64,000 nucleotides of DNA from Macrostomum lignano (taxonomy: Eukaryota), in NCBI GenBank assembly GCA_002269645.1, contig NIVC01001122.1, positions 186,001 through 250,000 of the forward strand, read 5' to 3'. Positions 22,101 to 53,201 of this stretch are shown piece after piece; positions within the stretch are counted from its first letter, which is position 1; each line of letters starts with the position of its first letter. Below the pieces are notes generated by a model. It was not told where the DNA came from, did no database searches, and saw only the letters and a program-made list of their open reading frames with translations. Both the position numbers and the translations under genes were made by a program.

Positions 22101-25100
22101 CACTGATAGTCTCTGATTATCCTGGGAGGCTCCCAACTGCACTGATAGTCTCTGATTATCCTGGGAGGCTCCCGACTGCACTGATAGTCTCTGATTATCC
22201 TGGGAGGCTTCCGACTGCACTGATAGTCTCTGATTATCCTGGGAGGCTCCCGACTGCACTGATAGTCTCTGATTATCCTGGGAGGCTCCCGACTGCACTG
22301 ATAGTCTCTGATTATCCTGGGAGGCTCCCAACTGCACTGATAGTCTCTGATTATCCTGGGAGGCTCCCGACTGCACTGATAGTCTCTGATTATCCTGGGA
22401 GGCTTCCGACTGCACTGATAGTCTCTGATTATCCTGGAAGGCTCTCAACTGCACTAATAGTCTATGGCTATCCTGGAAGGCTCCCAACTGCACTGATAGT
22501 CTATGGCTATTCTAAAAGGCCCCCGACTGCACTGATTTGTCTCTGATTATCCTGGGAGGCTCCCGACTGCACTGATAGTCTATGGCTATCCTGGAAGGCC
22601 CCCGACTGCACTGATAGTCTCTGATTATCCTGGGAGGCTTCCGACTGCACTGATAGTCTCTGATTATCCTGGAAGGCTCTCAACTGCACTAATAGTCTAT
22701 GGCTATCCTGGGAGGCTCCCAACTGCACTGATAGTCTATGGCTATCCTGGAAGGCTCTCAACTGCACTGATAGTCTATGGCTATCCTGGAAGGCTCCCAA
22801 CTGCACTGATAGTCTATGGCTATTCTAAAAGGCCCCCGACTGCACTGATTTGTCTCTGATTATCCTGGGAGGCTCCCGACTGCACTGATAGTCTCTGATT
22901 ATCCTGGGAGGCTCTCAACTGCACTGATAGTCTATGGCTATCCTGGAAGGCTCTCAACTGCACTAATAGTCTATGGCTATCCTGGAAGGCTCCCAACTGC
23001 ACTGATAGTCTATGGCTATCCTGGAAGGCTCCCGACTGCACTGATAGTCTCTGATTATCCTGGGAGGCTCTCAACTGCACTGATAGTCTATGGCTATCCT
23101 GGAAGGCTCTCAACTGCACTAATAGTCTATGGCTATCCTGGGAGGCTCCCAACTGCACTGATAGTCTATGGCTATCCTGGAAGGCTCTCAACTGCACTGA
23201 TAGTCTATGGCTATCCTGGAAGGCTCCCAACTGCACTGATAGTCTCTGATTATCCTGGAAGGCTCCCGACTGCACTGATAGTCTCTGATTATCCTGGGAG
23301 GCTCTCAACTGCACTGATAGTCTATGGCTATCCTGGAAGGCCCCCGACTGCACTGATAGTCTCTGATTATCGTGGGAGGCTCCCGACTGCACTGATAGTC
23401 TGATAATTTGCAGGTGTACCGCAGCAAAGACAACAAGATCAGTTTAAAGCTCGGCGACTTCGGCCTGGCAATGGAGGTTGAAGAGGCAATCTTTACTGTT
23501 TGCGGCACGCCAACCTACGTCGCCCCGGAGATTCTGTCGGAGACAGGTGAGCGGATGACAGGTGCTGCGCCCTTCCTGTTGATTTTGAATCAGGTGAGAG
23601 GAAAAAGGGAAAAATTAGATTACGATTAGAAATTTTGTTACCGAGGGGAGAACGTTTAAATCATCCGAGGGATGACGACAGGATGTCAGGTTTATCCTGG
23701 ATTTATAAATTCATATTTACTATACAAATCATTTTATATTAACAAAAACTGCATAGTTTATATTGTCCTTAGTAGTTTGAACTAATCAGCCTGCACGACT
23801 TGACCGACTTGAAGTCCTACTAGAGTTTATGAGGAACTTAATTTACTTGGAAAGTCTCTTCTCTCTGCGTCCCTCTACCTTGCTTCCTGTCAACACAATG
23901 GCGTCTCAAGTTTGCCACCTGGCAACTATTATTAAATTGGCTTCTTGAGCTTCCTGTGAACAGTTAGAAAGATAGTCGGGGCTGGGGCGCCACAAAGAGA
24001 GCGCGCGGGACAGTTCCTGTTCCATTAAGTTCAATCGGTCCATTTGTATCAGTCCCAAAGTATTATCAGCAGGCTTATGTCTAATAGGACTCCCCTTTAT
24101 CCATTCGGTTGCCACTCTTATCCACTGGGTTGCCACTCCTTATCCATTAGGTTGCCACTCTTATCCACTGGGTTGCCACTCCTTATCCATTAGGTTGCCG
24201 CTCCTTATCCATTGGGTTGCCATTCTCTCTTATCCATTGGGTTGCCATTCTCTCTTATCCATTAGGTTGCCGCTCCTTATCCATTGGATTGCCATTCTCT
24301 CTTATCCATCGGGTTGCTGCTCCTTATCCATTGGGTTGCCACTCTCTCTTATCTATTTGGTTGCCACTCCTTATCCATTGGGTTGCCACTCCTTATCCAT
24401 TGGGTTGCCACTCTTATCCATTAGGTTGCCGCTCCTTATCCATTGGGTTGCCATTCTCTCTTATCCATTGGGTTGCCATTCTCTCTTATCCATTAGGTTG
24501 CCGCTCCTTATCCATTGGATTGCCATTCTCTCTTATCCATCGGGTTGCTGCTCCTTATCCATTGGGTTGCCACTCTCTCTTATCTATTTGGTTGCCACTC
24601 CTTATCCATTGGGTTGCCACTCCTTATCCATTGGGTTGCCACTCTTATCCATTAGGTTGCCGCTCCTTATCCATTGGATTGCCATTCTCTCTTATCTATT
24701 TGGTTGCCACTCCTTATCCATTGGGTTGCCACTCCTTATCCATTGGGTTGCCGCTCCTTATCCATTGAGTTGCCACTCCTTATCCATTAGGTTGCCGCTC
24801 CTTATCCATTGGGTTCCCATTCTCTCTTATCCATTGGGTTGCCACTCCTTATCCAGTGTGTTGCCATTCTCTCTTATCCATTGGGTTGCCACTCTCTCTT
24901 ATCTATTTGGTTTCCACTCCTTATCCAGTGTGTTGCCACTCTCTCTTATCCATTGGGTTGCCACTCCTTATCCATTGGGTTGCCACTCCTTATCCAGTGG
25001 GTTGCCACTCCCTCTTATCTATTGGGTTGCCAATTAAATCTAATTAAAAACAAGTCCACTCTCCCATTCCAGGCTATGGACTCGAAGTGGACATGTGGGC

Positions 25101-26241
25101 CCTGGGCGTCATTGCCTACATCTTGCTGTGCGGCTTCCCCCCGTTCCGCAGTCGGGACCGGCGCCAGTCAGAGCTGTTCCAGATGATCAAGACTGGCACC
25201 TTTGAGTACCTCAGCCCCTACTGGGACCACGTGTCCGCCCGTGAGTGCGCTGGCTACCTGCCTACCTGCCTACCTGCCTACCTGCCTACCTGCCTACCTG
25301 CCTACCTGCCTACCTGCCTACCTGCCTACCTGCCTACCTGCCAACCTGCCTACCTGCCAACCTGCCTACCTGCCTACCTGCCTACCTGCCAACCTGCCTA
25401 CCTGCCAACCTGCCTACCTGCCAACCGAACTACCCTTCAATTCTACTCTACCCACTCCACTTGCCCCCTTTGTCACTTTACATCCCCATTGTCACCCACA
25501 TCCCCATTGTCACCCACATCCCCATTGTCACCCACATCCCCATTGTCACCCACATCCCCATTGTCACCCACATCCCCATTGTCACCCACATCTCATTGTC
25601 ACTCCACATCCCATTGTCACTCCACATCCCCATTGTCACTCCACATCCCATGTCACTCCATATCCCCATGTCACTCCACATCCCATTGTCACTCCATATC
25701 CCATGTCAATCCACATCCCCTTGTCAATCCACATCCCCTTGTCAATCCACATTACATTGTCACTCCACATTCCATTGTCAATCCACATCCCATTGTCACT
25801 CCACATCCCATTGTCACTCCACATCTCATTGTCACTCCATATCCCATTGTCACTCCACATCTCATTGTCACTCCACATCCCATTGTCACTTTACATCCCA
25901 TTGTCACTCCACATCCCATTGTCACTCCACATCCCATTGTCACTCCACACCTCTACATAAATTTGAATTCGAAATCTCACACCGCAGCCGCCAAGGATCT
26001 CATCAACCGTCTCCTAGTGGTGGACAAGGCGGCCCGCCTCACCGCCATAGACGTCCTTTGCCACGCCTGGGTGCTGTCACGCGGCGGCTCACAACGCCAG
26101 GAGCAGGAGCAGCAGACTGACTCAGCCGCCTTGAAAGACGAGCAGTCCCGTCTGCGCGACCAGCTTGTTGCAGAGGCGGCCGCAGCGATTGAAGAGTTCA
26201 GCAAATTGAAGGCTTCTAGTCTCTATGGCGGGGTTACCTGA
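16646..26241 (+). CDS. DCLK3: Doublecortin-like Ser/Thr kinase (DCLK3-like), two DCX domains plus CaMK-type kinase, about 910 aa
   Basis: Exons 16646(or 16658)-17048, 18300-18820, 19163-20416, 23414-23546, 25073-25240, 25988-26241; all GT-AG and phase-consistent (2733 nt). DCX1: NGDIFFKG...[14 protein letters not shown]2: [10 protein letters not shown]...KMLLNRR. Kinase motifs [45 protein letters not shown]. Family is secure; the DCLK3 subtype is from recalled signatures. Confidence 0.88.
17250..17935. repeat. Intronic 59-mer tandem repeat (about 11-12 copies)
   Basis: Unit aaccagtgcaaactgtggttggtttattgcccattaaactggggctggagtcagagcct. Confidence 0.95.
18846..19131. repeat. (TTAG)n microsatellite with TCAG variants
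   Basis: Fills most of the DCLK intron 18821-19162. Confidence 0.97.
21105..23402. repeat. Intronic 39-mer satellite ctgcactgatagtctctgattatcctgggaggctcccga
   Basis: About 59 copies; ends a few nt before the splice acceptor at 23413. Confidence 0.97.
24095..25032. repeat. Intronic about 22-mer ccttatccattgggttgccact
   Basis: Tandem copies read directly. Confidence 0.95.
25252..25950. repeat. Intronic (cctacctg)n followed by 18-mer catcccattgtcactcca
   Basis: Two adjacent arrays, about 25252-25425 and about 25480-25950. Confidence 0.95.
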
Positions 26242-26637
26242 GACTCCTCTCATTGCGCGAAAAACTGCTGCTTTCTACTCTTAGTAGCATAAAGTGGCTG
26301 TTTATTGCTGTTTAAATGCTTAAAAAACCAGATTAAACTATTTTTTGCGAATTTGATAGAAACTTGAAAGCTCTCCCACTGGCAGTGTTTGCTTTGCTTG
26401 TTCGTCCTGCTGCGTAGCCATTCTAGTGCATTTACGTATCGATTAAATTACTATTTTATTATAATTATTTACTTAATTATACCGTTACTTACCTGTGTGC
26501 GAATTTGGGGGATGAAAAAATGATTGTGACATGTCTAAGTAAATATATTGTTCAATTAAAAATGAATCAAATCTAAGCTTGTAAGGATTTCTGCTTTAAT
26601 TTACTGTCAGCCCAGTTGGGTGGAACTGCAAGTTAAC

Positions 26638-27170
26638 TCTCACTCCCCTTCACTCTCACTCCCCTTCACTCTCACTCCCCTTCACTCTCACTCCCCTTCA
26701 CTCTCACTCCCCTTCACTCTCAGTCCCCTTCACTCTCACTCCCCTTCACTCTCACTCCCCTTCACTCTCACTCCCCTTCACTCTCACTCCCCTTCACTCT
26801 CACTCCCCTTCACTCTCACTCCCCTTCACTCTCACTCCCCTTCACTCTCACTCCCCTTCACTCTCACTCCCCTTCACTCTCACTCCCCTTCACTCTCACT
26901 CCCCTTCACTCTCACTCCCCTTCACTCTCACTCCCCTTCACTCTCACTCCCCTTCACTCCCAGTCCCCTTCACTCTCACTCCCCTTCACTCTCTCAGTTG
27001 CCTTCACTCTCACTCCCCTTCACTCTCACTCCCCTTCACTCTCATTCCCCTTCACTCTCTCAGTTGCCTTCACTCTCACTCCCCTTCACTCTCACTCCCC
27101 TTCACTCTCTCAGTTGCCTTCACTCTCACTCCCCTTCACTCTCTCAGTTGCCTTCACTCTCACTCCCCTT
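26638..27170. repeat. Intergenic 16-mer cactctcactcccctt
   Basis: Tandem copies read directly. Confidence 0.95.
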
Positions 27171-27835
27171 TTCTTTTCACTTTCACGTTTCTCCTGAGTG
27201 CAGTAATTTCTGTCTCGCTGTCTGGCAAAAAGAGTTAATTATAATTTAATGACTGAGTGAAAATTGTCAACAGACAAGCTAATTGCAACTCCACCATAAA
27301 AGATGTTGTTTAAATTAAAATAAAAAACTTGTGAAAGCTGCTGCTGGAATCGGAAATGAGGCGCAGCTTTTGAATTTGCCGGGGGCGGCAGCAGCAGAAC
27401 AGAAATCTGGGGCCGGGGAACGGGAGGATAAGGGGGGGGTAATTGCAGCTGTTTCTAGGGCTGCTGGCATCAGATAATTACCCAACCTTGGTCTTTGTAG
27501 TTTGTCGAAGGCGGCTTGTCCGAATGCACAAGAGGAGAAGCAGAAATAAAAGACAGTGGAGAAAAGTCAAAAGGGAAGTCGAGGGGTTGGGGTTGGACAG
27601 GAGGTGGCCCTCTCCCGCCAAGCGCGGAAGAGGAAGTCGGTAATTAATAGAGCGAGGCGGGCGAGGGAACGGAGCCTACACTGCAACCCCCCCCCCCCAC
27701 TCGTCCAGCCAGAAAGCCCGCATGACATCTAATGCCAAGCCTCGCAGCTCGCTGCTTTGACCCCTTTCAGGGAAAATTGTTTGCTTTTAGCATTTGAGTC
27801 CAAGTAACATGAAAATTGGCTTGGTTGGATTCGCT

Positions 27836-28940
27836 GCAGCTTGAAGGTGGCTGAGTGCAGCTTGAAGGTGGCTGAGTGCAGCTTGGAGGTGGCTGAGTGC
27901 AGCTTGGAGGTGGCTGAGTGCAGCTTGGAGGTGGCTGAGTGTAGCTTGGAGGTGGCTGAGTGCAGCTTGAAGGTGGCTGAGTGCAGCTTGGAGGTGGCTG
28001 AGTGCAGCTTGGAGGTGGCTGAGTGCAGCTTGGAGGTGGTTGAGTGCAGCTTGGAGGTGGCTGAGTGCAGCTTGAAGGTGGCTGAGTGCAGCTTGGAGGT
28101 GGCTGAGTGCAGCTTGGAGGTGGCTGAGTGCAGCTTGGAGGTGGCTGAGTGCAGCTTGGAGGTGGCTGAGTGCAGCTTGGAGGTGGCTGAGTGCAGCTTG
28201 AAGGTGGCTGAGTGCAGCTTGAAGGTGGTTGAGTGCAGCTTGAAGGTGGTTGAGTGCAGCTTGAAGGTGGCTGAGTGCAGCTTGAAGGTGGTTGAGTGCA
28301 GCTTGAAGGTGGTTGAGTGCAGATTGGAGGTGGCTGAGTGCAGCTTGAAGGTGGAATTGGCTTTCTTATACCGATTTGAACTATACTGCTTTGTGCGCTT
28401 GGCTGCTCAATTTTAGCTTACCATTGTAGACCCTCCCCCTCCACTGAACTGATCGATTTCTATTTATGCGTACAGTACTTCTTCGCAATGTACATCGTTC
28501 GTCCTAACTACATGTACTCAGTTCTATAATACAATATAAAGGACCAACGCGTCAGTTTAGAAACGCTGTCTACAACTTGCGGCTCAAGCCAATTCAATCG
28601 CTTCGTCTCAATCTCAATTCATCACAGTTGAGTGCAGCTTGAAGGTGGCTGAGTGTAGCTCGTAGCTTGGAGGTGGCTGAGTGTAGCTTGGGGGTGGCTG
28701 AGTGCAGCTTGAAGGTGGCTGAGTGCAGCTTGAAGGTGGCTGAGTGCAGCTTGAAGGTGGCTGAGTGCAGCTTGAAGGTGGTTGAGTGCAGCTTGGAGGT
28801 AGCTGAGTGTAGCTGGGAGGAGGCTGAGTGCAGCTTGAAGGTGGTTGAGTGCAGCTTGGAGGTGGCTGAGTGCAGCTTGAAGGTGGTTGAGTGCAGCTTG
28901 GAGGTGGCTGAGTGTAGCTTGGAGGTGGCTAAGTGCAGGT
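27836..28940. repeat. 21-mer gtgcagcttggaggtggctga in two blocks split by about 270 bp of unique sequence
   Basis: Blocks 27836-28354 and 28626-28940. Confidence 0.93.
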
Positions 28941-29222
28941 TAGATGTACAGCAGAGTATGAGACATGTCATAAATTGAGATGAAAATAGTTATTGCGAGA
29001 TGCGGAGGTATTCAAGGATTCTCCCAAGCGTTGTCTTCGTTCTCTCGTAAAAAAACTTGGGAACCTTTCTGAGCCAATGGCATCCAGCTGCCAGTGAGAG
29101 CTGCATTTCTCCCCCATGGCTTTTGGCCTGCATTCGAATGGTGTAAATTGGCACTGACAGCTCCTATCGGGTTCCAATTGATCACTCGGAAACAACTGCG
29201 CTGTTATCTTCAACAATCAGGG

Positions 29223-32200
29223 ATGCAGACAGCCGCCAGGTTCACCCCGGAGCAGCCTGACGGTCCGGACTTCTCGCCACAGAGCGGCGGAGCCGGCGGC
29301 TACCCCGGCGGCCTGTCTGTCGCGGCGGCCTACTCCTCCGCACTCGGCCAGGGATTTCCGGCCGCCGCCAGGTCCGCCGCTCTCTACATCTCGGCTGCTC
29401 ACGGCTTCGGTGGCGACCAGGCCGCTGCCGCCGCTTACTTCGCTGCCCACCACGGCTTCGGCGCTGCCAGGCCTGATGGTGAGTCAAGGCCTGATACAGC
29501 TGCTGCATCCCGCCTTCATCTGTCTGAGCTGCTGCATCCCGCCTTCATCTGTCTGAGCTGCTGCATCCCGCCTTCATCTGTCTGAGCTGCTGCATCCCGC
29601 CTTCATCTGTCTGAGCTGCTGCATCCCGCCTTCATCTGTCTGAGCTGCTGCATCCCGCCTTCATCTGTCTGAGCTGCTGCATCCCGCCTTCATCTGTCTG
29701 AGCTGCTGCATCCCGCCTTCATCTGTCTGAGCTGCTGCATCCCGCCTTCATCTGTCTGAGCTGCTGCATCCCGCCTTCATCTGTCTGAGCTGCTGCATCC
29801 CGCCTTCATCTGCCCTGTCTGTCCCTCATCTCCCACTGCCTGTCCCTCATCTCCCACTGCCTGTCCCTCATCTCCCACTGCCTGTCCCTCATCTCCCTGT
29901 CTGTCCCTCATCTGCCCTGTCCGTCCCTCATCTGCCCTGTCCGTCCCTCATCTGCCCTGTCCGTCCCTCATCTGCCCTGTCCGTCCCTCATCTGCCCTGT
30001 CCGTCCCTCATCTGCCCTGTCCGTCCCTCATCTGCCCTGTCCGTCCCTCATCTGCCCTGTCCGTCCCTCATCTCCCCCTGTCCCTCATCTGCCCTGTCCG
30101 TCCCTCATCTCCCCCTGTCTGTCCCTCATCTCCCCCTGTCTGTCCCTCATCTCCCCCTGTCTGTCCCTCATCTGCCCTGTCCGCCCTTCACCCTTTCTAC
30201 CCGCTTCCCAGTTCTCCCTTTCACTTCCTCATCTTCCCATTCCATCTCAAACAGCCTCACGCACTGTCTCTGCATCAAGTCTCTATATCTCGTATGGCCA
30301 TTTAAACTGGATTGACCCGAAAATCTCAGCAAAATACGGCTTCTGAACATTCCTGCCATTGCCGCACAGCCGCAGGCTGCCTCGTGCCCCTGCCGTCTGG
30401 CAACAAGAAGCTGCGCCGATTGCGCAAGCCGCGCACCATCTACTCCAGCCTCCAGCTGCAGCAGCTCAGCAGGCGGTTCCAGCGCACCCAGTACCTGTCA
30501 TTGCCTGAGCGGGCTGAGCTGGCAGCCAGCCTGGGGCTCACGCAGACTCAGGTGAGTAGCATTTGAGCAGACCGCTCTTAGCTGTTTATGACTGCTCTTA
30601 GCTGTTTATGACTGCTCTTAGCTGTTTATGACCTCTCTTAGCTGTTTATGACCACTATTAGCTGTTTATGACCTCTCCAGCTGTGTATGACCTCTCTTTG
30701 CTGTGTACGACCTCTCTTAGCTGTATATGACCTCTCTCAGCTGTGTATGACCTCTCTTAGTTGTTATCACCTCTCTTATCTGTGTATGACCTCTCTTTGC
30801 TGTGTACGACCTCTCTTAGCTGTATATGACCTCTCTCAGCTGTGTATGACCTCTCTTAGCTGTGTATGACCTCTCTTAGCTGTGTATGACCTATGACCTC
30901 TCTTTGCTGTGTATGACCTCTCTTTGCTGTGTATGACCTCTCTCAGCTGTGTATGACCTCTCTTAGTTGTTATAACCTCTCTCAGCTGTGTATGACTTCT
31001 ATCAGCTGTGTATGACTTCTCTCAGCTGTGTATGACTTCTCTCAGCTGTTATCACCTCTCTTAGCTTTCATTTTTCCCGAATGCCGCTGCTTGAAAAACT
31101 GACAAACTGTCAGGCTCGACAGGAGGAAAATCAAACTCGTGCAGCGATCCACTTTTCTTCTCAAAGAGAGAGGGAGAGAGAGAGAGAGACCTTCGCCGCC
31201 CAAAGTCTCCAGCCAGGTGGGAGCAGCTCAGGTGGCGGCAGGAGCAGTGAGGCCTGCAATTATCTGCAATTGAATGGCGACAGATGGGGCTGCCTGCAGG
31301 CGGTGACTTTTTGTGAGTCAGTTTTTGTTTGAAGTTCCTGGCCACCTTTTTTCTATTCAACGGCTTCGAAACCCTCTGCCCTGCGACAGCTTCTGGAGGT
31401 TTGATCAGTTGCTTGTCCGAATTGTTCGAACCTTGAAATTTGCAATCGAATTGGAGAAGCAACAGGCTCGGGAAGTTGCAAACTTCTATCGAATAATAGC
31501 AGATTGTTCAGTATGTAGCTGAGTTGAATAATGGCAGATTGTTCAGTGTGTAGCTGAGTTGAATAATGGCAGATTGTTCAGTGTGTAGCTGAGTTAAATA
31601 ATGGCAGATTGTTCAGTGTGTAGCTGAGTTGAATAATGGCAGATTGTTCAGTGTGTAGCTGAGTGAATAATGGCAGATTGTTCAGTATGTAGCTGAGTTG
31701 AATAATAATGGCAGATTGTTCGGTATTTAGCTGAGTGAATAATGGCAGATTGTTCAGTATGTAGCTGAGTTGAATAATAATGGCAGATTGTTCAGTATGT
31801 AGCTGAGTTGAATAATAATGGCAGATTGTTCGGTATGTAGCTGAGTGAATAATGGCAGATTGTTCAGTATGTAGCTGAGTTGAATAATAATGGCAGATTG
31901 TTCAGTATGTAGCTGATGTGAATAATGGCAGATTGTTCAGTGTGTAGCTGAGTTGAATAATAATGGCAGATTGTTCAGTGTGTAGCTGAGCTGAATAATG
32001 GCAGATTGTTCAGTGTGTAGCTGAGCTGAATAATGGCAGATTGTTCAGTATGTAGCTGAGTTGAATAATGGCAGATTGTTCAGTGTGTAGCTGAGTTGAA
32101 TAATGGCAGATTGTTCAGTGTGTAGCTGAGTTGAATAATGGCAGATTGTTCAGTATGTAGCTGAGTTGAATAATGGCAGATTGTTCAGTGTGTAGCTGAG

Positions 32201-35142
32201 TTGAATAATTGCAGATTGTTCAGTGTGTATCTAAGCTGAATAATGGCAGATTGTTCAGTATGTAGCTGAGTGAATAATGGCAGATTGTTCAGTATGTAGC
32301 TGAGTTGAATAATGGCAGATTGTTCAGTATGTAGCTGAGTTGAATAATGGCAGATTGTTCAGTATGTAGCTGAGTTGAATAATGGCAGATTGTTCAGTAT
32401 GTAGCTGAGTTGAATAATGGCAGATTGTTCAGTGTGTATCTAAGCTGAATAATGGCAGATTGTTCAGTATGTAGCTGAGTGAATAATGGCAGATTGTTCA
32501 GTATGTAGCTGAGTTGAATAATGGCAGATTGTTCAGTGTGTATCTAAGCTGAATAATGGCAGATTGTTCAGTATGTAGCTGAGTGAATAATGGCAGATTG
32601 TTCAGTATGTAGCTGAGTTGAATAATGGCAGATTGTTCAGTGTGTAGCTGAGTTGAATAATAATGGCAGGTTGTTCAGTATGTAGCTGAGTTGAATAATG
32701 ATGGCAGATTGTTCAGTGTGTAGCTGAGTTGAATAATAATGGCAGATTGTTCAGTATGTAGCTGATGTGAATAATGGCAGATTGTTCAGTGTGTAGCTGA
32801 GTTGAATAATAATGGCAGATTGTTCAGTATGTAGCTGATGTGAATAATGGCAGATTGTTCAGTGTGTAGCTGAGTTGAATAATAATGGCAGATTGTTCAG
32901 TGTGTAGCTGAGCTGAATAATGGCAGATTGTTCAGTGTGTAGCTGAGTTGAATAATGGCAGATTGTTCAGTATGTAGCTGAGTTGAATAATGGCAGATTG
33001 TTCAGTGTGTAGCTGAGTTGAATAATGGCAGATTGTTCAGTGTGTATCTAAGCTGAATAATGGCAGATTGTTCAGTATGTAGCTGAGTGAATAATGGCAG
33101 ATTGTTCAGTATGTAGCTGAGTTGAATAATGGCAGATTGTTCAGTATGTAGCTGAGTTGAATAATGGCAGATTGTTCAGTGTGTATCTAAGCTGAATAAT
33201 GGCAGATTGTTCAGTGTGTATCTAAGCTGAATAATGGCAGATTGTTGAGTATGTAGCTGAGTTGAATAATGGCAGATTGTTCAGTATGTAGCTGAGTTGA
33301 ATAATGGCAGATTGTTCAGTATGTAGCTGAGTTGAATAATGGCAGATTGTTCAGTGTGTATCTAAGCTGAATAATGGCAGATTGTTCAGTATGTAGCTGA
33401 GTGAATAATGGCAGATTGTTCAGTATGTAGCTGAGTTGAATAATGGCAGATTGTTCAGTGTGTAGCTGAGTTGAATAATAATGGCAGGTTGTTCAGTATG
33501 TAGCTGAGTTGAATAATGATGGCAGATTGTTCAGTGTGTAGCTGAGTTGAATAATAATGGCAGATTGTTCAGTATGTAGCTGATGTGAATAATGGCAGAT
33601 TGTTCAGTGTGTAGCTGAGTTGAATAATAATGGCAGATTGTTCAGTGTGTAGCTGAGCTGAATAATGGCAGATTGTTCAGTGTGTAGCTGAGTTGAATAA
33701 TGGCAGATTGTTCAGTATGTAGCTGAGTTGAATAATGGCAGATTGTTCAGTGTGTAGCTGAGTTGAATAATGGCAGATTGTTCAGTGTGTATCTAAGCTG
33801 AATAATGGCAGATTGTTCAGTATGTAGCTGAGTGAATAATGGCAGATTGTTCAGTATGTAGCTGAGTTGAATAATGGCAGATTGTTCAGTGTGTATCTAA
33901 GCTGAATAATGGCAGATTGTTCAGTATGTAGCTGAGTGAATAATGGCAGATTGTTCAGTATGTAGCTGAGTTGAATAATGGCAGATTGTTCAGTATGTAG
34001 CTGAGTTGAATAATGGCAGATTGTTCAGTATGTAGCTGAGTTGAATAATGGCAGATAATGGCAAGAATGGCAGTCGCTGCAACCATCAGGTGAAAATTTG
34101 GTTCCAAAACCGAAGATCGAAATTCAAGAAGCTGGTGAAGCTGGGCAACGATCCTCATCTGCTGATCAACTCGATGAGTCTGTGTGGTGAAGGCGACGCA
34201 GAGTTCGAGCAGGTGAGGCTTGAGAAGGATTCTGAGCTGGACTTTACACGACAGATCGCACATCACACATTACTGATACATGGCAAAGTGAAAATCGCAC
34301 ATCACACATTACTGATACATGGCAAAGTGAAAATCGCACATCACACACTATTGATGCATGGCAAAGTGAAAATCGCACATCACACATTACTGATGCATGG
34401 CAAAGTGAAAATCGCACATCACACACTATTGATGCATGGCAAAGTGAAAATCGCACATCACACATTACTGATGCATGGCAAAGTGAAAATCGCACATCAC
34501 ACACTATTGATACATGGCAAAGTGAAAATCGCACATCACACACTATTGATGAATGGCAAAGTGAAAATCGCACATCACACACTATTGATACATGGCAAAG
34601 TGAAAATCGCACATCACACACTATTGATACATGGCAAAGTGAAAATCGCACATCACACACTATTGATGAATGGCAAAGTGAAAATCGCACATCACACACT
34701 ATTGATGCATGGCAAAGTGAAAATCGCACATCACACACTATTGATGCATGGCAAAGTGAAAATCGCACATCACACACTATTGATGCATGGCAAAGTGAAA
34801 ATCGCACATCACACACTATTGATGCATGACAAAGTGAAAGTAGCACATGGAATTTTCATTCAACCCGCTGTCCGCCCGCAGCCTCCAAACGCGGAAGTCA
34901 ACATTCAGCCAGTACAGCAGCAACTGGCGGAAAATTTGGGAGCAGCATCAGCGTCAGCCTCCGCTCCATCAGCCGCGAGCAGCCATCAGCTCAACCGATG
35001 GTGCCACCAAGAAGCTTCAGCCTACGGCACAATGCAGTCAACGGCTTTCGATGCACGACCGTGGCACCAGAAGAGCCAGCAGCCGAGCAACGGTTCCCAA
35101 GCCTTCTATGACTGGTTTGAGTACCCGTCTCAAACCAACTAG
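29223..35142 (+). CDS. Dll: Distal-less/Dlx homeobox protein, copy A (about 271-273 aa)
   Basis: Exons 29223-29478, 30370(or 30376)-30551, 34090-34212, 34882-35142. Homeodomain [44 protein letters not shown]|[14 protein letters not shown], with the Dlx-typical intron between HD codons 44 and 45. The start codon is less certain. Confidence 0.9.
29499..30185. repeat. Dlx A intron 1: 29-mer (11 copies) followed by about 20-mer ctgccctgtccgtccctcat
   Basis: Homologous to the arrays at 41812-42613 (inverted). Confidence 0.95.
30575..31065. repeat. Intronic 20-mer tctcttagctgtgtatgacc
   Basis: Tandem copies read directly. Confidence 0.93.
31495..34060. repeat. Intronic 34-38-mer gaataatggcagattgttcagtatgtagctgagtt
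   Basis: About 2.5 kb array in Dlx A intron 2. Confidence 0.97.
34255..34845. repeat. Intronic 39-mer catggcaaagtgaaaatcgcacatcacacactattgatg
   Basis: About 15 copies in Dlx A intron 3; open in the Dlx reading frame. Confidence 0.95.
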
Positions 35143-35449
35143 TTTAGCAAATCTAGTTTTCTAGCTACGTTGGCTTGACTTGCTGTAACGCCTCAGCGCT
35201 TTTCATCATAAACGATGATCGACTGTGGCTGGATTGCCAGGAATTTCTTTGCGCTAATTCATGCATTGTTTGCATTTGAAATGAGTTCGATTGACTAATT
35301 TATTTCTAATCCTTTTAGTCAAATTATTCTACTAAGAGTAAGCAATTAAGAGGTTTTAAAATTTCAATGAGGCGTTTGATCTCTGATTGATTGGCCAAAC
35401 GGGTAGAGCAGAAAAGCATTGACGGTTAGGGTTTTGTGTTTTTTTTAGA

Positions 35450-36208
35450 ATTAGGGTTAGGACCAAGGTTACGGTTAGGATCAGGGTTAGGATTAGGATT
35501 ATGATTAGGATTAGCATAAAGATTAGGATTAGGATCAGGGTTAGGATTAGGATTAGGATTAGGATTAGCATAAGGATTAGGATCAAGGTTAGGATTAGGA
35601 TTATGATTAGGATTAGCATTAGGATTAGGATTAGGATCAGGGTTAGGATTAGGATTATGATTAGAATCACGGTTAGGAGTAGGATTAGGGATAGGATTAG
35701 GATTAGGATTCGAATTAGGATTAGGGATAAGATTAGGATTAGGGATAAGATTAGGATTAGGGATAAGATTAGGATTAGGGATAAGATTAGGATTAGGGAT
35801 AAGATTAGGATTAGGGATAAGATTAGGATTAGGGATAAGATTAGGATTAGGGATAAGATTAGGATTAGGGATAAGATTAGGATTAGGGATAAGATTAGGA
35901 TTAGGGATAAGATTAGGATTAGGGATAAGATTAGGATTAGGGATAAGATTAGGATTAGGGATAAGATTAGGATTAGGGATAAGATTAGGATTAGGGATAA
36001 GATTAGGATTAGGGATAAGATTAGGATTAGGGATAAGATTAGGATTAGGGATAAGATTAGGATTAGGGATTAGATTAGGATCAAGATTAGGAATAGGATT
36101 AGGATTAGGATTAGGACTAGGATTAGGATTAGGATTAGGATCAGGATCAGGGTTAGGATTAGGATTAGGATAAGGATCAGGATTAGGATTAGGGCTAGGA
36201 TTAGGGTT
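35450..36208 (+). repeat. Telomere-like array (TTAGGA/TTAGGG; central 18-mer gattaggattagggataa)
   Basis: Degenerate hexamer flanks around a homogeneous 18-mer core at about 35720-36070; single orientation. Confidence 0.85.
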
Positions 36209-38822
36209 TGTGGCGATTAATTTATACTGTCTGATAGCTTATAAAAACGAGTTAAGCACAGGGCAGTTAAAATATATAAAAAATCACCATCACTGAGAGA
36301 TGTTGCTCCTTCCTTTTTCACGGAAACCCCCGAAACTCCAGCAGCAGCCGCCTCCGCACGGAAGGCAGAAATTAACAATTTTTTTTCGCTGCTCAGTTGA
36401 GGATGAAGCAGCGGAGGCTGGGCTTTTTTTAAACTGGATAAACAAAATTCGACATTTCGAGCTGAAGCCGCTTCCGCACGCACCGGAAGTGAATTCGTTC
36501 GAATGGGAGGCTGATAGATCCTGCTCTCTGCTTCCGCCTTCCACTCTTCCTCCACTTTCAGCTTCAGGGCAGCTCTGGTCTCTCTGAGTCACTCAGGCGC
36601 CAGTGTGTGTTTTTCATTTTTCAAGTTTTCAGTGATGAAAATTTCATAATATTAGCGCAATTTTATTATTGAGTACACCATGGTTATGTAGAATCGGTAA
36701 AGGGATTCCACTGTTGCATTTCCCAAGAGAAACGGTGAAAATATTTGCCTGCTTGTTTTACCTGCTTAGCCCCCCCCCCGAGCGGCCTTTGACTTTCATC
36801 GCTAATTGGCCCTCTTAAGCTGCTCCCCGATCAGCAAGTCCTCAGAGCGATTGTTTGAGCAGCTCGAAGAGGGAGAGAAAGACAAAAAATAGGCTTTTTT
36901 GAGCAAAAACTGTCGCTCTTCTGTCTGCTTTTTGTTGCTGCAAGCCTTTGTGCGAGAGGCGAGGGAACAAAGGCGCTCAAATGTTGAAAGCAACCCTGCT
37001 GTTATGCTGCTTTTGCTGCCGCTCCGCTCTGGCTAAGGCTGCGTGTTACTGATTGAGGGCTGATGGGGGGACGGCCCCATGCGCACCTGAGGCTTGAATC
37101 CAGCCTACTCAACTCGAGGACTCACCTGAGGGGTCGTGTGCCCCCCCCATATCCCCAGAATTGCATGAGCGATCCCCCCCCCCAACGAGAGCATCGAATC
37201 AGCGATCCATTCTCCTCCATGGCCTGACCAGCGCGTGTCTCTTTCACCAACAAGCCATATTATTCGATTTAATCTGACTCAATCACACGCTTTTGCATTA
37301 AACTAACCTGTTTAAAACAAACTTTCAAAGCTTTTCCTAGCACTGGCCTAGCAGTCAGGCACAACACAATGCAATAATAGCGATTTTCGTTCATTTAGCA
37401 TGGCAACAAAATGATGATGGAGAATTAGCTATGGAGAAAGAGTCTGAGGACAGGGCTAGGCGGGGCCTAATCTCCAAGGCCCGTAGGAAGGATTCGTTGC
37501 CTCCAGAGTCTTATTCCCTCTTCCCCAGGGTGGATCCGCCCACCTCCACAATTCAAAGGCTCGACCATCGCACACCACACACCAAGGCCCGCACACCAGC
37601 CAGAGCGCCCGTCTGTGCATTCTGGTCCTCGGTGACTGAGCAGGACAGGGCAGGCCGGTTCTGCTTGGCCAAAAGTTGCTTTCAAACCATAAGCGAGGAG
37701 TCCCCGGCGATTTTTTTTTACCTTGAGCCCCGAGCCCATCCGAGGGAAGGGGGGAGGGTTGGCAGGAGGCAACCCCCCTTTGCTTGGGCGAAGGTACCCG
37801 CTAATTACAGGGGGGAGCAGGGGGAGGTCCGCCCGCCCTCCCCTACCCTCCACTGTCTCTCTGTGTCTCGAATTCGTTCGGAACTCATGGCAAGTTCTGT
37901 GGCGGGTGGCACCAAGCCGCGGCCTCCTGCTCATGACGGAGCGGCGTTTGTGCCCGGCGTCTCAAATTTCAGCGCTTCTCGACACAACTGCCTCTGGCCT
38001 GTGCTCGGCTGGCGGGGGGGGGGGCACAGCGTGAACTCGAATTTTCTATTCAGACTGCCAACCGCCAGACCAACATGCCTCTGAAATTTATGGCCTTTGT
38101 CTTAGCTGGCATTCATCTTGTAACATATCATCTTGTTCTTGTGTCGCTGCAATGGCCATTTGAGTCGGTATCTGTTGTCTTTGTTATCAATCATCTGCGG
38201 CATTTGAAGTACATTTCCAATTCTCAAACAACGTTGCGAAAATCTTTCAAAATTAAATTCAATGTTCGGAACAGACATATGGGTTTTTTTAGCACTGAGC
38301 TACACAGAGCTTGTATAAACATATATTAGATTGCACAATTCCTGCATATAAATTCTTCATATTTTTATATTTCAAATTCTGTTATTGCAGATAGTATGCA
38401 AAAGATATTGCTACAGGTGCTGTAGGGGTGGTGGGGGCTATAAGGTGAGCTTCGGAGCGCGTATTAAAAGCATAATGAATATTAGCGGAAACCAACGCAC
38501 AAACCAGAAGCGCGGACAAACAAGCAACAGTTATATTAGGAAAATTTTGTGTAAGAAAAAAGCAGAGAAAAAATGTATATTATTGAAACGGCCGACAAAA
38601 GCGAAACAATGGGAGAAAAAGCAGCAATTCAAGTGAGCAGTGGGGGCACGGATATATTGGACGCTGTGCAACTACCAAACTGCATTTATACCGACCGGCC
38701 CTAGTAACAAAAGTATATTTTTGTACCGAGCTTAAGTTTAATCTATTGACTAATTTATAGTTGTTAAGCCGGTAGGCTTGAGAGATACTCGAATGGGAAT
38801 GTCGGTCTCAGGCGCGTCCAGA

Positions 38823-41800
38823 TCAGCACTCCTGATGGTTGTACACCTGCTGCTGATAGCCGCCGCTGTACCAGTACGGGTTTCCGTGGTAACTGTAGCC
38901 TGGATGAGGCGACATCGGCAACTGGTAGGCGTTGCCATGGAGATGATGCGATTGCTCCCAGTCTCCGCTATACGAATGCAGCTGAGAATGCTGCTGCTGA
39001 TGATGTTGCTGCAGTGCGTGCTGATGCTGGAGCGCGTGCTGATGCGGGAGCAACTGCGATATCAGGGGGCCACTGGCGCCTCCTCCAGGTGCACCAACTT
39101 CACCAAGCAGGGCCGGTGGCGGCGGAGGCAGCGGCTGCGGCTTCTGAATTTCCGGAACTCCCGAGTCGCCGCTTCCAGCGGCGTCGGCTTCAGCCTCGGA
39201 GGATCCGTGAGTTGTCGGCGGAGGCGGAGGTCGGGAGTTCGAATCCAAGGAGTCAGCTTCGCAGGCTTCGTTAGCCGAGTCAAGCTGTTGCTGGCGCTGT
39301 TGAAAATGCTGATGAAGCTGGGGATGCTGGGGAAGCTGGTGCATCGGGATGATCGCTTCAGACTTTATCGGACTGTTCGCTTCGTTCTTCATCATCATTT
39401 CCTGGAAAGAATCGGTTTTTTTATCTAGATTAAAATTTTTAACTTTGTTTGAATCCTCTTATCCGTTTTTTTTCAACTAAAAGACTGCTGTCTCATTAAG
39501 GATTCTGAAATTCTTTTCTATCCCAAAATCTGACGATTCACTTGCCCCCATTCAATCCGCTACCCCTCACCCGATCCTCCAGGACTGCTCCGTTACCCCT
39601 CACCCGATCCTTCAGGACTGCTCCGTTACCCCTCACCCGATCCTTCAGGACTGCTCCGTTACCCCTCACCCGATCCTTCAGGACTGCTCCGCTACCCCTC
39701 ACCCGATCCTTCAGGACTGCTCCGCTACCCCTCACCCGATCCTTCAGGACTGCTCCGCTACCCCTCACCCGATCCTTCAGGACTGCTCCGCTACCCCTCA
39801 CCCGATCCTTCAGGACTGCTCCGCTACCCCTCACCCGATCCTCAGGACTGCTCCGCTACCCCTCACCCGATCCTTCAGGACTGCTCCGCTACCCCTCACC
39901 CGATCCTTCAGGACTGCTCCGCTACCCCTCACCCGATCCTTCAGGACTGCTCCGCTACCCCTCACCCGATCCTTCAGGACTGCTCTGCTACCCACTAAAA
40001 CTCTGCTTCATCAAAATCCCAAAGAACTCACGTCATCAGAAAATTCCTCATCGTCGGCGTTCATGCTGTCAACCAGGTTCTGCGGGTCCTGGCCCTGCTT
40101 CAGCAGTTTCTTATACTTGGACCGCTTGTTCTGAAACCAAATCTTCACCTGAAATATTGAGTTAAGAGGGAAAAATTATTGATAAGTCAAAGGCCTCTAT
40201 AAAGACAATAGCTCAAAGCATTTTAGAGATATAAAGCAGAATAGAGTGGCACAATGGCGCCCTCAGGAGAGAGTGAGAATAGGCTAGAACTCTCCATGCA
40301 TTCCTCCCAACTTCAAGGATGCAACAGTTGCGTCACGGCGCGCACGCCACCAACCATGCGCGCTGACGAGTGGCGAGGAAGAGCCCGCCCCGCAGAACGC
40401 TGAGAGGACATTCGCGGGCCGTCACGCAATCCAAAACAATTCTATTTGAGTCCTCGGGGCGTTTTTGGCATCGGTAGGGGAGAAGTTTTCTTTTCCTTTT
40501 TGTTGCTTCTTCACTCTTCGCGGGGATGTCGCTTTTTAAAGGCTACTCTAGCATTGCTAACGTTGTGTCTATCCCTTTCTATCCCTGTCTATCCCTGTCT
40601 ATCCCTTTCTATCCCTGTCTATCCCTGTCTATCCCTGTCTATCCCTGTCTATCCCTGTCTATCCCTGTCTATCCCTGTCTATCCCTGTCTATCCCTGTCT
40701 ATCCCTGTCTATCCCTGTCTATCCCTGTCTATCCCTGTCTATCCCTGTCTATCCCTGTCTATCCCTGTCTATCCCTGTCTATCCCTGTCTATCCCTGTCT
40801 ATCCCTGTCTATCCCTGTCTATCCCTGTCTATCCCTGTCTATCCCTGTCTATCCCTGTCTATCCCATGTCTATCCCATGTCTATTCTTGCCTATCCCTGT
40901 CTATCCCTATCTCAGTCCATTTCCCCATCAAATCACAACTGAATATTCACTCACCTGAGTCTGCGTGAGCCCCAGGCTGGCTGCCAGCTCAGCCCGCTCA
41001 GGCAGTGACAGGTACTGGGTGCGCTGGAACCGCCTGTTAAGCTGCTGCAGCTGGAGGCTGGAGTAGATGGTGCGCGGCTTGCGCATCTTCTTGCCTTTGC
41101 CGAGGCCGGCGCCAACTCTGACACCCTCTGAGTCGCGCGGCAAGTCTGCGGGCAGTAGTTGGAGTTGTTGTTATTTTCGTTAAAAATTAAAACAAACAAA
41201 CATGACTATCCTGACCATGAGGGAAACAGGAACAAGTGGGAACTGTGGCGGAGTGGCCTGAAAGTTGGAGTAATCTGATTTATAAGTCAGTTGGGAAATT
41301 CGGCCACGCAACAGGTGGTCGTAGACAGCGATGGCAAAACAATGGGATTCCCCCGAAGGGAGATGGCTGTTCCAAAGAGACGACACGATGCGATGAAATC
41401 ACTCTGAATTTCTACTCGCTTTAATCTTGACTGTCCTGCCTGCCTGTCTGTCTATATTATCTGGTCCGACTTCTTACAATAGATAGATTTTTATTTGAGA
41501 TCTTTGAGACGGCGAGGGGCCTCGGCCGGACTTACAGATAGCAATCTCGTTTGGTGGGGTTGGTCGCCGATTGAGAAGGCGGGCAGGGGCGGGGCTCTGA
41601 GGCCAGTGGGGATCTAACTCTTTGCTCCCACAGTCGGACTTTGGTTGAGTTGGCTGAGGATTTGGAAAGGTAGGAAAGGTGAGAATGGAGCCAGAGAATG
41701 AAGCCAGAGGAATTTGTTTGATAAAGTCAGTAAAAATAGCCAGGCTGTGATTGAGAAAGGGGAGGAGAGGATGACTAAAAGGAAAAGTAAAGCAATTGGT

Positions 41801-42928
41801 GGAGAGTAGAGAGACAGGCAGTGGGAGATGAAGGACAGGCAGTGGGAGATGAGGGACAGGCAGTGGGAGATGAGGGACAGGCAGGGGGAGATGAGGGACA
41901 GGCAGGGGGGATGAGGGACAGGCAGGGGAGATGAGGGACAGGCAGGGGGAGATGAGGGACAGGCAGTGGGAGATGAGGGACAGGCAGGGGAGATGAGGGA
42001 CAGGCAGGGGGATGAGGGACAGGCAGGGGAGATGAGGGACAGGCAGTGGGAGATGAGGGACAGGCAGTGGGAGATGAGGGACAGGCAGTGGGAGATGAGG
42101 GACAGGCAGTGGGAGATGAGGGACAGACAGGGGGAGATGAGGGACAGGCAGGGGGAGATGAGGGACAGGCAGGGGGAGATGAGGGACAGGCAGGGGGAGA
42201 TGAGGGACAGGCAGGGGGAGATGAGGGACAGGCAGGGGGAGATAAGGGACAGGCAGGGGGAGATGAGGGACAGGCAGGGGGAGATGAGGGACAGGCAGGG
42301 GGAGATGAGGGACAAACAGGGGAGATGAGGGACAGGCAGGGGGAGATGAGGGACAGACAGGGGGAGATGAGGGACAGGCAGGGGAGATGAGGGACAAACA
42401 GGGGGAGATGAGGGACAGGCAGGGGGAGATGAGGGGTAGACAGGGCAAATGAGGCGGGATGCAGCAGCTCAGACAGATAAAGGCGGGATGCAGCAGCTCA
42501 GACAGATGAAGGCGGGATGCAGCAGCTCAGACAGATGAAGGCGGGATGCAGCAGCTCAGACAGATGAAGGCGGGATGCAGCAGCTCAGACAGATGAAGGC
42601 GGGATGCAGCAGCTGTATCAGGCCTTGACTCACCATCAGGCCTGGCAGCGCCGAAGCCGTGGTGGGCAGCGAAGTAAGCGGCGGCAGCGGCCTGGTCGCC
42701 ACCGAAGCCGTGAGCAGCCGAGATGTAGGGAGCGGCGGACCTGGCGGCGGCCGGAAATCCCTGGCCGAGTGCGGAGGAGTAGGCCGCCGCGACAGACAGG
42801 CCGCCGGGGTAGCCGCCGGCTCCGCCGCTCTGTGGCGAGAAGTCCGGACCGTCAGGCTGCTCCGGGGAATATGGGCCACCGGCGGCGGCTGCTGCGGCCG
42901 CGGCAGCCGCGGATTTCAAAGTTTCCAT
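38823..42928 (-). CDS. Dll: Distal-less/Dlx homeobox protein, copy B (393 aa)
   Basis: Exons 42928-42634, 41145-40955, 40148-40032, 39401-38823; GT-AG and phase-consistent (1182 nt). Homeodomain [44 protein letters not shown]|[17 protein letters not shown]-rich C-terminus. Confidence 0.92.
39560..39990. repeat. Intronic 33-mer gctacccctcacccgatccttcaggactgctcc
   Basis: About 13 copies in Dlx B intron 3. Confidence 0.95.
40566..40910. repeat. Intronic 10-mer ctatccctgt
   Basis: Dlx B intron 2. Confidence 0.97.
41812..42613. repeat. Dlx B intron 1: about 20-22-mer gagatgagggacaggcagggg plus 29-mer (6 copies)
   Basis: Inverted homologs of 29499-30185. Confidence 0.95.
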
Positions 42929-51729: not shown

Positions 51730-53201
51730 TCAAGTGGACTCGGCCGTCTCCCAGCTCTCTTCAACAATGGCGCGCACCTTTTTCTCATATTCGCGCTTGT
51801 TCTCCTGGTAGAGAGTGGCGGCCACGTTGTTGGCTGGCGAGTTTGGGTTGGGCTCGTCCAGCAGGGACTGGATGGAGGTCAGCACGGCGGAAACGTCATA
51901 GGTGGGGCTCCACTTGGCCTGCGCAATTTTCAGGGATGCCAGGTAATTTGCAGATCAGTGCAGTGTGATGGCTCATTTGAGGAGCTGAGGTCTGGGTGGA
52001 GCTGAGGTCTGGGTGGAGCTGAGGTCTGGGTGGAGCTGAGGTCTGAGTGGAGCTGAGGTCTGGGTGGAGCTATCCTGGATCACTGGGTGGAGCTGAGGTC
52101 TGGGTGGAGCTGAGGTCTGGGTGGAGCTGAGGTCTGGGTGGAGCTGAGGTCTGGGTGGAGCTATCCTGGATCACTGGGTGGAGCTGAGGTCTGGGTGGAG
52201 CTGAGGTCTGGGTGGAGCTATCCTGGATCACTGGGTGGAGCTGAGGTCTGGGTGGAGCTGAGGTCTGGGTGGAGCTGAGGTCTGGGTGGAACTGAGGTCT
52301 GGGTGGAGCTGAGGTCTGGGTGGAGCTGAGGTCTGGGTGGAGCTGAGGTCTGGGTGGAGCTATCCTGGATCACTGGGTGGAGCTGAGGTCTGGGTGGAGC
52401 TGAGGTCTGGATCACTGGGTGGAGCTGAGGTCTGAGTGGAGCTGAGGTCTGGGTGGAGCTGAGGTCTGGGTGGTGCTGAGGTCTGGGTGGTGCTGAGGTC
52501 TGGGTGGAGCTGAGGTCTGAGTGGAGCTGAGGTCTGGGTGGAGCTGAGGTCTGGGTGGAGCTGAGGTCTGGGTGGTGCTGAGGCCTGGGTGGAGCTGAGG
52601 TCTGGGTGGTGCTGAGGTCTGAGTGGAGCTGAGGTCTGGGTGGAGCTGAGGTCTGGGTGGAGCTGAGGTCTGGGTGGAGCTGAGGTCTGAGTGGAGCTGA
52701 GGTCTGGGTGGAGCTATCCTGGATCACTGGGTGGAGCTGAGGTCTGGGTGGAGCTGAGGTCTGGGTGGAGCTGAGGTCTGGATCACTGGGTGGAGCTGAG
52801 GTCTGAGTGGAGCTGAGGTCTGGGTGGAGCTGAGGTCTGGGTGGAGCTGAGGTCTGGGTGGAGCTGAGACCCCAGCCTGAACACTGGGCAGAGTTAAGAG
52901 TAAAGGATGTCCAGATACTAACCTGCAGGATGTCCAGACAGATGCTGCCATCCGCGTAGACATTGGGATGAAACATTTTCGATACAAAGCGAACAAGCGG
53001 CGGCTTATTGGGATACTCTTCGCTGAACTCCATAGTCAGCTGGAAGGTGCCATCCTCAAATGGCGTGTCCTGCGGTCCGAAAATCAGGCAATTCCAATGC
53101 AGAATGTTGCTCTCGTTAGGGGCCCCAGATACGCCAGCAGGTGGGTCCTCCTGGAGGCGCTTGAAATCGCGAACAAGGCGACGCCTGGCTGGCGAAGTCA
53201 T
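51730..53201 (-). CDS. RAD6: Ubiquitin-conjugating enzyme E2, Rad6/UBE2A/B ortholog, 155 aa
   Basis: Exons 53201-52923 and 51918-51730. [21 protein letters not shown]...[16 protein letters not shown]|[33 protein letters not shown] motif, catalytic Cys88 and Ser120 are retained. Confidence 0.95.
51980..52870. repeat. Rad6 intronic 17-mer gtggagctgaggtctgg
   Basis: Tandem copies read directly. Confidence 0.97.

Follow-up and report, generated by a model that had tools for sequence, protein, structure and literature searches.

Two patches of near-identity between inverted, otherwise divergent Dlx paralogues of the flatworm Macrostomum lignano point to interlocus gene conversion

The closest described counterpart of the locus reported here is the Dlx pair of the annelid Capitella teleta, CtDlxa and CtDlxb, two neighbours in tail-to-tail orientation, separated by 18.2 kb and divergent elsewhere, whose homeobox 5' of the intron is identical or almost identical in nucleotides, as are a few bases of the intron itself (McDougall, Korchagina, Tobin & Ferrier 2011, BMC Evol Biol 11:241; PMC3199776). 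GENECONV detected a 150-bp tract in this pair, for which the authors propose proximity-based conversion of inverted duplicates; no other Dlx pair that they examined had such identity, and they list the Drosophila Hsp70, amylase and trypsin genes and the human Y-chromosome palindromes as further cases of concerted evolution of linked inverted duplicates (PMC3199776). Here we describe two Dlx genes, Dlx-A and Dlx-B, in a 64,000-nucleotide stretch of the genome of the flatworm Macrostomum lignano (GenBank assembly GCA_002269645.1, contig NIVC01001122.1, positions 186,001 to 250,000 of the forward strand; hereafter the window, in whose coordinates all positions are given). The two genes are nearly identical in two patches, which we call tract 1 and tract 2, and have diverged past alignment or to silent-site saturation elsewhere. 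In the literature on Macrostomum Dlx and on gene conversion in M. lignano we found no earlier description of this locus or of a flatworm Dlx pair.

Dlx-A (forward strand, 29223-35142) and Dlx-B (reverse strand, 42928-38823) are convergent, tail to tail, with a stop-to-stop gap of 3,680 bp. Both have four exons separated by GT-AG introns in phases 1/0/0, and intron 2 of each falls between homeodomain residues 44 and 45 (TQTQ/VKIW), the position typical of Dlx, with the GT donor after ...ACTCAG and the AG acceptor before GTGAA(A/G)ATTTGG. This common architecture, including the intron at residues 44/45, identifies the two as whole-gene paralogues. Their Pfam Homeodomain matches have E = 1e-21 and 5e-21, two to three homeodomain residues depart from the protostome Dll consensus, and protein searches with A and B returned named matches beyond M. 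lignano that were almost all DLX/Distal-less, from many animal phyla.

Tract 1 covers the core of exon 1 and the beginning of intron 1. An inverted-repeat search and a base-by-base comparison define a near-identical stretch of 416 nt, ungapped and with 2 mismatches, between 29245-29660 on the forward strand (Dlx-A) and its inverted counterpart 42452-42867 on the reverse strand (Dlx-B). It begins in codon 8 of Dlx-A, at its second base, and codon 22 of Dlx-B, and runs through the exon-1 core, the donor and 19 nt of unique intron sequence into the first 5.6 units of a 29-bp minisatellite; 5' of 29245 and 42867 the identity of A and B falls straight to random level. One mismatch, at 29383 (T in A, C in B), exchanges Leu (CTC) for Pro (CCC), the other, at 29633, lies within the 29-bp repeat, and the unique part differs at 1 of 253 nt. 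With the minisatellites included, the whole shared block measures ~943 nt in A (29245-30187) and ~1,034 nt in B (42867-41834), and blastn aligns 29245-30277 with 42867-41829 at 84% over 1,056 columns. A first-pass annotation of the window had reported this tract as 29245-29498 against 42867-42614 with a single mismatch; the near-identity there stands, but it does not end at 29498 and reaches 29660, and the Leu/Pro site, which had been given as 29393, is at 29383. The annotation had further called the N-termini, the remainder of intron 1, the 5' part of exon 2, introns 2 and 3 and exon 4 unalignable, and this is correct except for intron 1, where it is true only past the arrays, which are homologous to ~30187 in A and ~41834 in B.

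Tract 2 consists of the 5' half of the homeobox and the donor sequence GTGAGT, at 30421-30557 on the forward strand in Dlx-A and 40949-41085 on the reverse strand in Dlx-B. Over its 137 nt, 131 of them coding, the two genes are 98% identical, the 3 mismatches being two synonymous changes in Leu codons and one Ser/Asn exchange; coordinates and count agree with those first reported. The tract ends 6 bases into the intron, just past the consensus donor. Between the two tracts lie ~230 nt in A and ~720 nt in B that are unrelated to each other.

The divergence of A and B was measured segment by segment, with Nei-Gojobori estimates and raw counts. In the exon-1 core (77 codons), 1 of 231 nt differs, none of the 77 third positions does, and the synonymous divergence (dS) is 0 (0 of 61.7 synonymous sites); the homeobox half of exon 2 (43 codons) differs at 3 of 129 nt and 1 of 43 third positions, with dS = 0.062. 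The first 29 codons of exon 3, by contrast, differ at 29 of 87 nt and at 16 of 29 third positions, the proportion of synonymous differences (pS) is 0.80 and thus saturated, and the nonsynonymous divergence (dN) is 0.25. Among codons that specify the same residue in both genes, 2 of 118 are synonymously changed in the tracts as against 10 of 18 in exon 3 (Fisher p = 6e-9), and our recount of the first 15 codons of exon 3 returned the 7 of 13 synonymously different same-residue codons noted earlier. The longest identical run has p = 1.5e-4 against permuted alignment columns. Outside the tracts, blastn aligns A and B only in exon 3, at 74%. Local alignments of the promoter and N-terminus, of the intron past the arrays and of the 5' part of exon 2 are not significant (z = 0.6-1.5 against shuffles), and exon 4, with 87 codons in A and 193 in B, gives no credible alignment. 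Past the arrays, 28 nt on in A and 27 nt on in B, there is a collinear match, at z = 1.5 also not significant, that may be a remnant of older homology. The locus is therefore not a palindrome of the Y-chromosome type, with long contiguous near-identical arms: only 29245-30187 and 30421-30557 have inverted counterparts, and the rest of the 13.7-kb pair is unalignable.

The minisatellites of intron 1 are part of tract 1 and not a separate shared element. After the donor both genes have the same 19 nt, a 29-mer array, a similar junction and then a related 20/21-mer array. In Dlx-A (29498-30187, forward strand) 10.9 copies of the 29-mer (29498-29812) are followed by 19 of the 20/21-mer (29803-30187); in Dlx-B (41809-42614, reverse strand) there are 5.6 copies of the 29-mer (42614-42452) and then 30 of a 21-mer (42435-41809). 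Variants of the second-tier array are common to both genes, CCCTCATCTCCCACTGCCTGT occurring 3 times in A and 7 times in B, and CCCTCATCTCCCCCTGTCTGT 3 times in A and twice in B, and each second array has its own private dominant unit (a 20-mer in 9 copies in A, a 21-mer in 11 copies in B). None of the other intronic minisatellites of Dlx-A and Dlx-B is common to both, every intron having a private array, so the intron-1 arrays most likely travelled with exon 1 and are not relics of the duplication. A and B differ more in the array junction and the second arrays than in the first 416 nt of the tract, which is compatible with rapid turnover of the arrays or with an earlier round of exchange. Runs of canonical G-quadruplex (G4) motifs at 29886-30218 (reverse strand) and 41865-42445 (forward strand) occupy the 20/21-mer arrays, on the template strand of both genes, and are among the longest in the window.

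A third Dlx protein, P0003, makes it possible to group the segments separately. Judging from its UniParc accession batch it probably derives from the same genome as the M. lignano gene models, and apart from it no close relative from beyond M. lignano came up in the protein searches with A and B. Of its 29 residues in exon 3, 24 match B and 20 match A, and in the 5' part of exon 2 it groups with B, with which it has the KGKKM motif in common; its exon-1 core is ~40% identical to either gene, where A and B match each other at 76 of 77 residues. P0003 thus sides with B in exon 3 and 5' exon 2 and A sides with B in exon 1, so that in this three-protein comparison the segments seem to support different groupings, as expected after an exchange between A and B. 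Set against the Dlx of a monogenean flatworm and Dll proteins of other protostomes, B and P0003 retain the usual flatworm pattern KK-L-x-x-QGQDP, and Dlx-A is the derived copy in the unconverted parts.

Interlocus gene conversion between old inverted Dlx paralogues, in at least two patches, is the explanation of this mosaic that we favour with good confidence. The first-pass annotation had proposed homogenization of diverged inverted paralogues in two patches, and the comparison bears this out: dS is 0 and 0.06 in the tracts against saturation in exon 3, the identity takes in intron and minisatellite, the surroundings are unalignable, the groupings with P0003 seem to conflict, and the Capitella pair offers a precedent. 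Its further suggestions, fold-back pairing of the inverted copies and seeding by the shared minisatellite, are conjectural. We infer the repair mechanism from this pattern. The genes would have been duplicated long ago, their introns, exon 4 and the silent sites of exon 3 having since diverged past alignment or to saturation. Homology-directed repair of a break in one copy, with the inverted copy at a distance of 10-13 kb as template and no crossover, would then have led to an ectopic, non-reciprocal transfer. The tract 1 transfer would have spanned ~0.95-1.05 kb, from codon 8 (A) or 22 (B) through the rest of exon 1 and the donor to the intron-1 minisatellites, and the tract 2 transfer the homeobox 5' half of exon 2, leaving untransferred the intron past the arrays, 5' exon 2, helix 3, the C-termini, the promoters and the first 7-21 codons. 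From their motif content, the G4-prone intron-1 arrays are plausible break-prone sites at which repair could have been initiated.

Because the segment between the tracts is unrelated and of unequal length in the two genes, no single continuous tract can account for the pattern, and at least two tracts or events are required. Tract 2 stops where the similarity imposed by the protein stops, as expected if exchange needs pre-existing identity; exon 3, short and silently diverged, would no longer qualify. At the Ser/Asn site of tract 2, the Asn of B and P0003 is ancestral and the Ser of A derived; A therefore mutated after the transfer, which says nothing on its direction. In M. lignano the genome is present in three paralogous copies, with differences of 2.2% overall and 1.1% in coding sequence (PMC10733133). 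Tract 1 differs by 0.4-0.5% and tract 2 by 2.2%, at or below this level of subgenome divergence, which suggests that the exchanges are about as recent as the genome duplication, or more so.

Several points weigh against gene conversion or against details of it. The divergence of tract 1 (2/416) is not significantly different from that of tract 2 (3/137; p = 0.10), and two events, as opposed to one patchy event, are what we infer. Tract 1 begins abruptly at its 5' edge, just beyond which A and B give no significant alignment, and this also fits a non-homologous partial duplication. The direction of transfer, from A to B or from B to A, receives no polarity from the GC content of the segments, nor from that at third codon positions (GC3; higher in the tracts, 0.77-0.88 vs 0.60-0.74), which is confounded by amino-acid composition. 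The per-segment tree test depends on a single extra protein, P0003, whose species is suggested by its accession batch. M. lignano assemblies are difficult, with three near-identical subgenome copies, 93% of read pairs multi-mapping and chimeric scaffolds reported (PMC10733133).

The abrupt edge invites the idea of a one-off partial inverted duplication, by exon capture or a replication template switch, in which ~1 kb of exon-1 core and intron-1 arrays was inserted upstream of an older Dlx paralogue and the exon-2 patch arose separately. Template switching typically yields nearby inverted copies. Such an insertion would account for a tract 1 boundary lying only 22 nt downstream of the Dlx-A ATG, for a private Dlx-A N-terminus of only 7 codons and for flanks that are not significantly alignable on either side. 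However, the copy sits in frame, at the homologous position and with the same intron phase, the second patch lies at exactly the homologous place in exon 2, the residues just upstream look weakly homologous (AA-R-F-T-PEQ in A against its B counterpart), and random insertion rarely produces an intact gene; we consider this origin unlikely. A greater stretch is needed to attribute the tracts to assembly or polishing, the consensus of one copy having been overwritten by reads of the other, or a chimeric join having formed, in a repeat-rich neopolyploid. The subgenome copies, multi-mapping read pairs and chimeric scaffolds named above are what such errors feed on, and tandem short-unit arrays (units of 4-151 bp; 52 Tandem Repeats Finder rows) make up 39% of the window (1-64000). 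Yet the arms do differ at a few sites, the arrays differ in copy number and dominant unit, both genes have intact splice sites and reading frames, and polishing homogenizes only sequences that are already nearly identical. The older annotation lends partial support to the tracts, with the exon-1 core joined to an A-type exon 2 in four models (P0002, P0004, P0007, P0121) and to a B-type exon 2 in one (P0001), and we find an artefact very unlikely. Because the older models contain frameshifts that are not in the window, they derive from other copies or a different assembly. One of the A-type models, P0121 (A0A1I8JNY6), reads PPLPTS in a shifted frame, which requires the B-type C at the site of 29383; the Leu/Pro difference of the exon-1 cores is thus polymorphic, not fixed, among A copies.

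Could the tracts have been held together by selection, with no exchange at all? Purifying selection on the nucleotides themselves, through codon bias, exonic splicing signals or an embedded regulatory element, would suit tract 2, which is the most conserved part of the protein and whose intronic extension is just the consensus donor GTGAGT, and it would suit the high GC3 of both tracts. But in exon 3, whose helix 3 is conserved to the same degree, synonymous divergence is saturated, and tract 1 takes in an intron, a minisatellite and a poorly conserved Ala/Gly-rich region that is ~40% identical in P0003. A further yardstick comes from unrelated marine metagenome contigs in which this homeobox half is repeated in tandem, two to three times: the copies encode near-identical peptides, but diverge freely at third positions, by 8-25 of 43. 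Silent divergence of these copies, together with the identity of intron and minisatellite at our locus, means that constraint at the protein level cannot explain the tracts, and we hold nucleotide-level selection to be highly improbable. Least credible of all is a young inverted duplication of the whole gene, followed by extremely fast divergence everywhere except in two patches. Asymmetric fast protein evolution is real here, A being more derived in all unconverted parts, but it cannot saturate silent sites or erase the alignability of introns while the exon-1 core gains 0 synonymous changes.

The gene models on which these comparisons are based are supported by older annotation. In Dlx-A, exon 1 (29223-29478, forward strand) begins with the ATG at 29223 and is followed by a GT donor at 29479 and a phase-1 intron, with the junction ARPD/GCLVPL as in P0002, P0004, P0007 and P0121, models that reproduce the A splice junctions; exon 2 (30376-30551, alternative acceptor 30370) has an A-specific 5' part and, in its 3' part, homeodomain residues 1-44; exon 3 (34090-34212), unconverted, continues from homeodomain helix 3 onward; and exon 4 with the stop (34882-35142) is the part that cannot be aligned with exon 4 of Dlx-B. 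The predicted protein has 271 amino acids (273 with acceptor 30370), and M. lignano entries match it with 94-100% identity over the aligned part. In Dlx-B, on the reverse strand, exon 1 (42634-42928) begins with the ATG at 42928 and has 21 B-specific codons at its start, exon 2 (40955-41145) is joined at ARPD/DLPRD as in P0001, exon 3 (40032-40148) is unconverted, and exon 4 with the stop (38823-39401) is joined at FSDD/EMMMK, again as in P0001. The predicted protein has 393 amino acids; the UniParc entry P0001 is 100% identical to it over 72% of the query and covers its three exon junctions.

The GC content of the window is 48.5%, and repeats abut coding sequence in more than one place. In four UniProt models of M. 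lignano (A0A1I8JP92, A0A1I8FIJ1, A0A1I8JR90, A0A1I8JNY6) the 3' end of the upstream DCX-kinase gene is fused to Dlx-A (window 25087-29478). Some of these models translate a 21-bp minisatellite (27835-28354) into 'AECSLEV' repeats, and one uses the AG at 29226-29227, directly after the Dlx-A ATG. The fusions are probably annotation artefacts, and the 5' end of Dlx-A given here is a prediction. A single open reading frame (34048-35142) runs without a stop from before Dlx-A exon 3, through the minisatellite of intron 3 (a 39-bp unit, equal to 13 codons, in 15 units), into exon 4. Intron 3 thus keeps the frame through its minisatellite, so that its retention would add a repetitive in-frame insert and not truncate the protein. 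Pfam searches of long open reading frames give the gene order Hobbit/BLTP2 (forward), DCX-DCX-kinase (forward, ~16.6-26.2 kb), Dlx-A (forward), Dlx-B (reverse), a ubiquitin-conjugating E2 (reverse) and a dynein light chain (reverse). The E2 gene again has repeats abutting coding sequence: the open frame of its RAD6/UBC-type exon (52218-53201, reverse strand; UQ_con, E = 4.5e-33) runs on into a 17-bp minisatellite (51981-52868).

The 3.7-kb spacer from one Dlx stop codon to the other (35143-38822), in which no further gene was detected, contains a degenerate telomere-like hexamer array (35445-36205) of 55 TTAGGA and 25 TTAGGG units in one orientation. Both tract pairs have their axis of symmetry within this array (midpoints 36056 and 35753). 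An origin of the locus as a palindrome or by telomere fusion was considered and rejected; with the array in one orientation only, there is no support for a head-to-head fusion. The marine contigs that served as a yardstick (L001-L005, from Tara and other sources) have their tandem exons for homeodomain residues 1-44 on one strand, ~350-400 bp apart (for example L004, 640-1525), with no helix-3 exon nearby, and look like a mutually exclusive exon array in a planktonic animal.

The arrangement of the tracts raises the question of what reciprocal exchange between them would do. After a crossover in tract 1, the 12.8 kb separating the arms would be inverted, so that the A promoter and first 7 codons would join B exons 2-4 and the B promoter A exons 2-4, both in frame; with a crossover in tract 2, the genes would instead exchange their helix-3 and C-terminal halves. 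Were such inversions to segregate among the three subgenome copies or in populations, the tracts might act as a natural switch of promoters and domains for a developmental transcription factor, with conversion as its by-product, a notion that we regard as unlikely: the five older gene models all have the parental A-A or B-B arrangement, and nothing yet supports an inversion. In a weaker form of the idea, homogenization of the same homeobox half in independent tail-to-tail pairs, those of Capitella and Macrostomum, could mean that coupling of the pair is favoured.

The locus offers a clean case of ectopic conversion, with an internal control, in a gene of animal development: one half of the homeobox has been copied, and the other half, under equal protein constraint, shows the true, much greater age of the duplication. 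Dlx phylogenies built on the homeobox can accordingly make old duplicates appear species-specific. In M. lignano, paralogues seem to have exchanged sequence on a time scale similar to that of the recent genome duplication, and a conversion tract can take an intronic minisatellite along. This may be the first flatworm Dlx pair to be described, and it is a second lophotrochozoan tail-to-tail Dlx pair with conversion in the same region. The phenomenon is already published for the Capitella pair, and no new mechanism is revealed; its interest, which we judge moderate, lies in Dlx evolution, homeobox phylogenetics and the genome biology of M. lignano.

Compared with the best-known cases of concerted evolution, the M. 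lignano pair probably resembles the Hsp70, amylase and trypsin genes and the Y-chromosome palindromes in that intrachromosomal, non-reciprocal exchange keeps nearby inverted copies nearly identical. There, however, homogenization takes in whole genes or whole palindrome arms, whereas here two short patches are affected, 5-8% of the ~13.7-kb pair, and the remainder cannot be aligned. The chordate bigene clusters Dlx1/2, Dlx3/4 and Dlx5/6 share the convergent arrangement with a short spacer (PMC8520905) and the homeobox intron at residues 44/45, but vertebrate Dlx pairs are without comparable nucleotide identity between their members (Figure 5 of PMC3199776), and orthology of the flatworm pair with the chordate pairs is unlikely. 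The regions that can be aligned with chordate or annelid pairs are short, and conversion obscures the phylogeny. The likeness is greatest to Capitella, although the duplication in Platyhelminthes was probably independent of the annelid one. The Capitella genes have three exons and a spacer of 18.2 kb, the M. lignano genes four exons and 3.7 kb between stops; the 3' half of the Capitella homeobox is also near-identical (3 differences), whereas that of M. lignano is saturated at synonymous sites; and M. lignano has a second, larger and younger tract over exon 1 and an intronic minisatellite, of which none is reported for Capitella. Beneath these differences, both are tail-to-tail lophotrochozoan Dlx pairs in which the same half of the homeobox has been homogenized.

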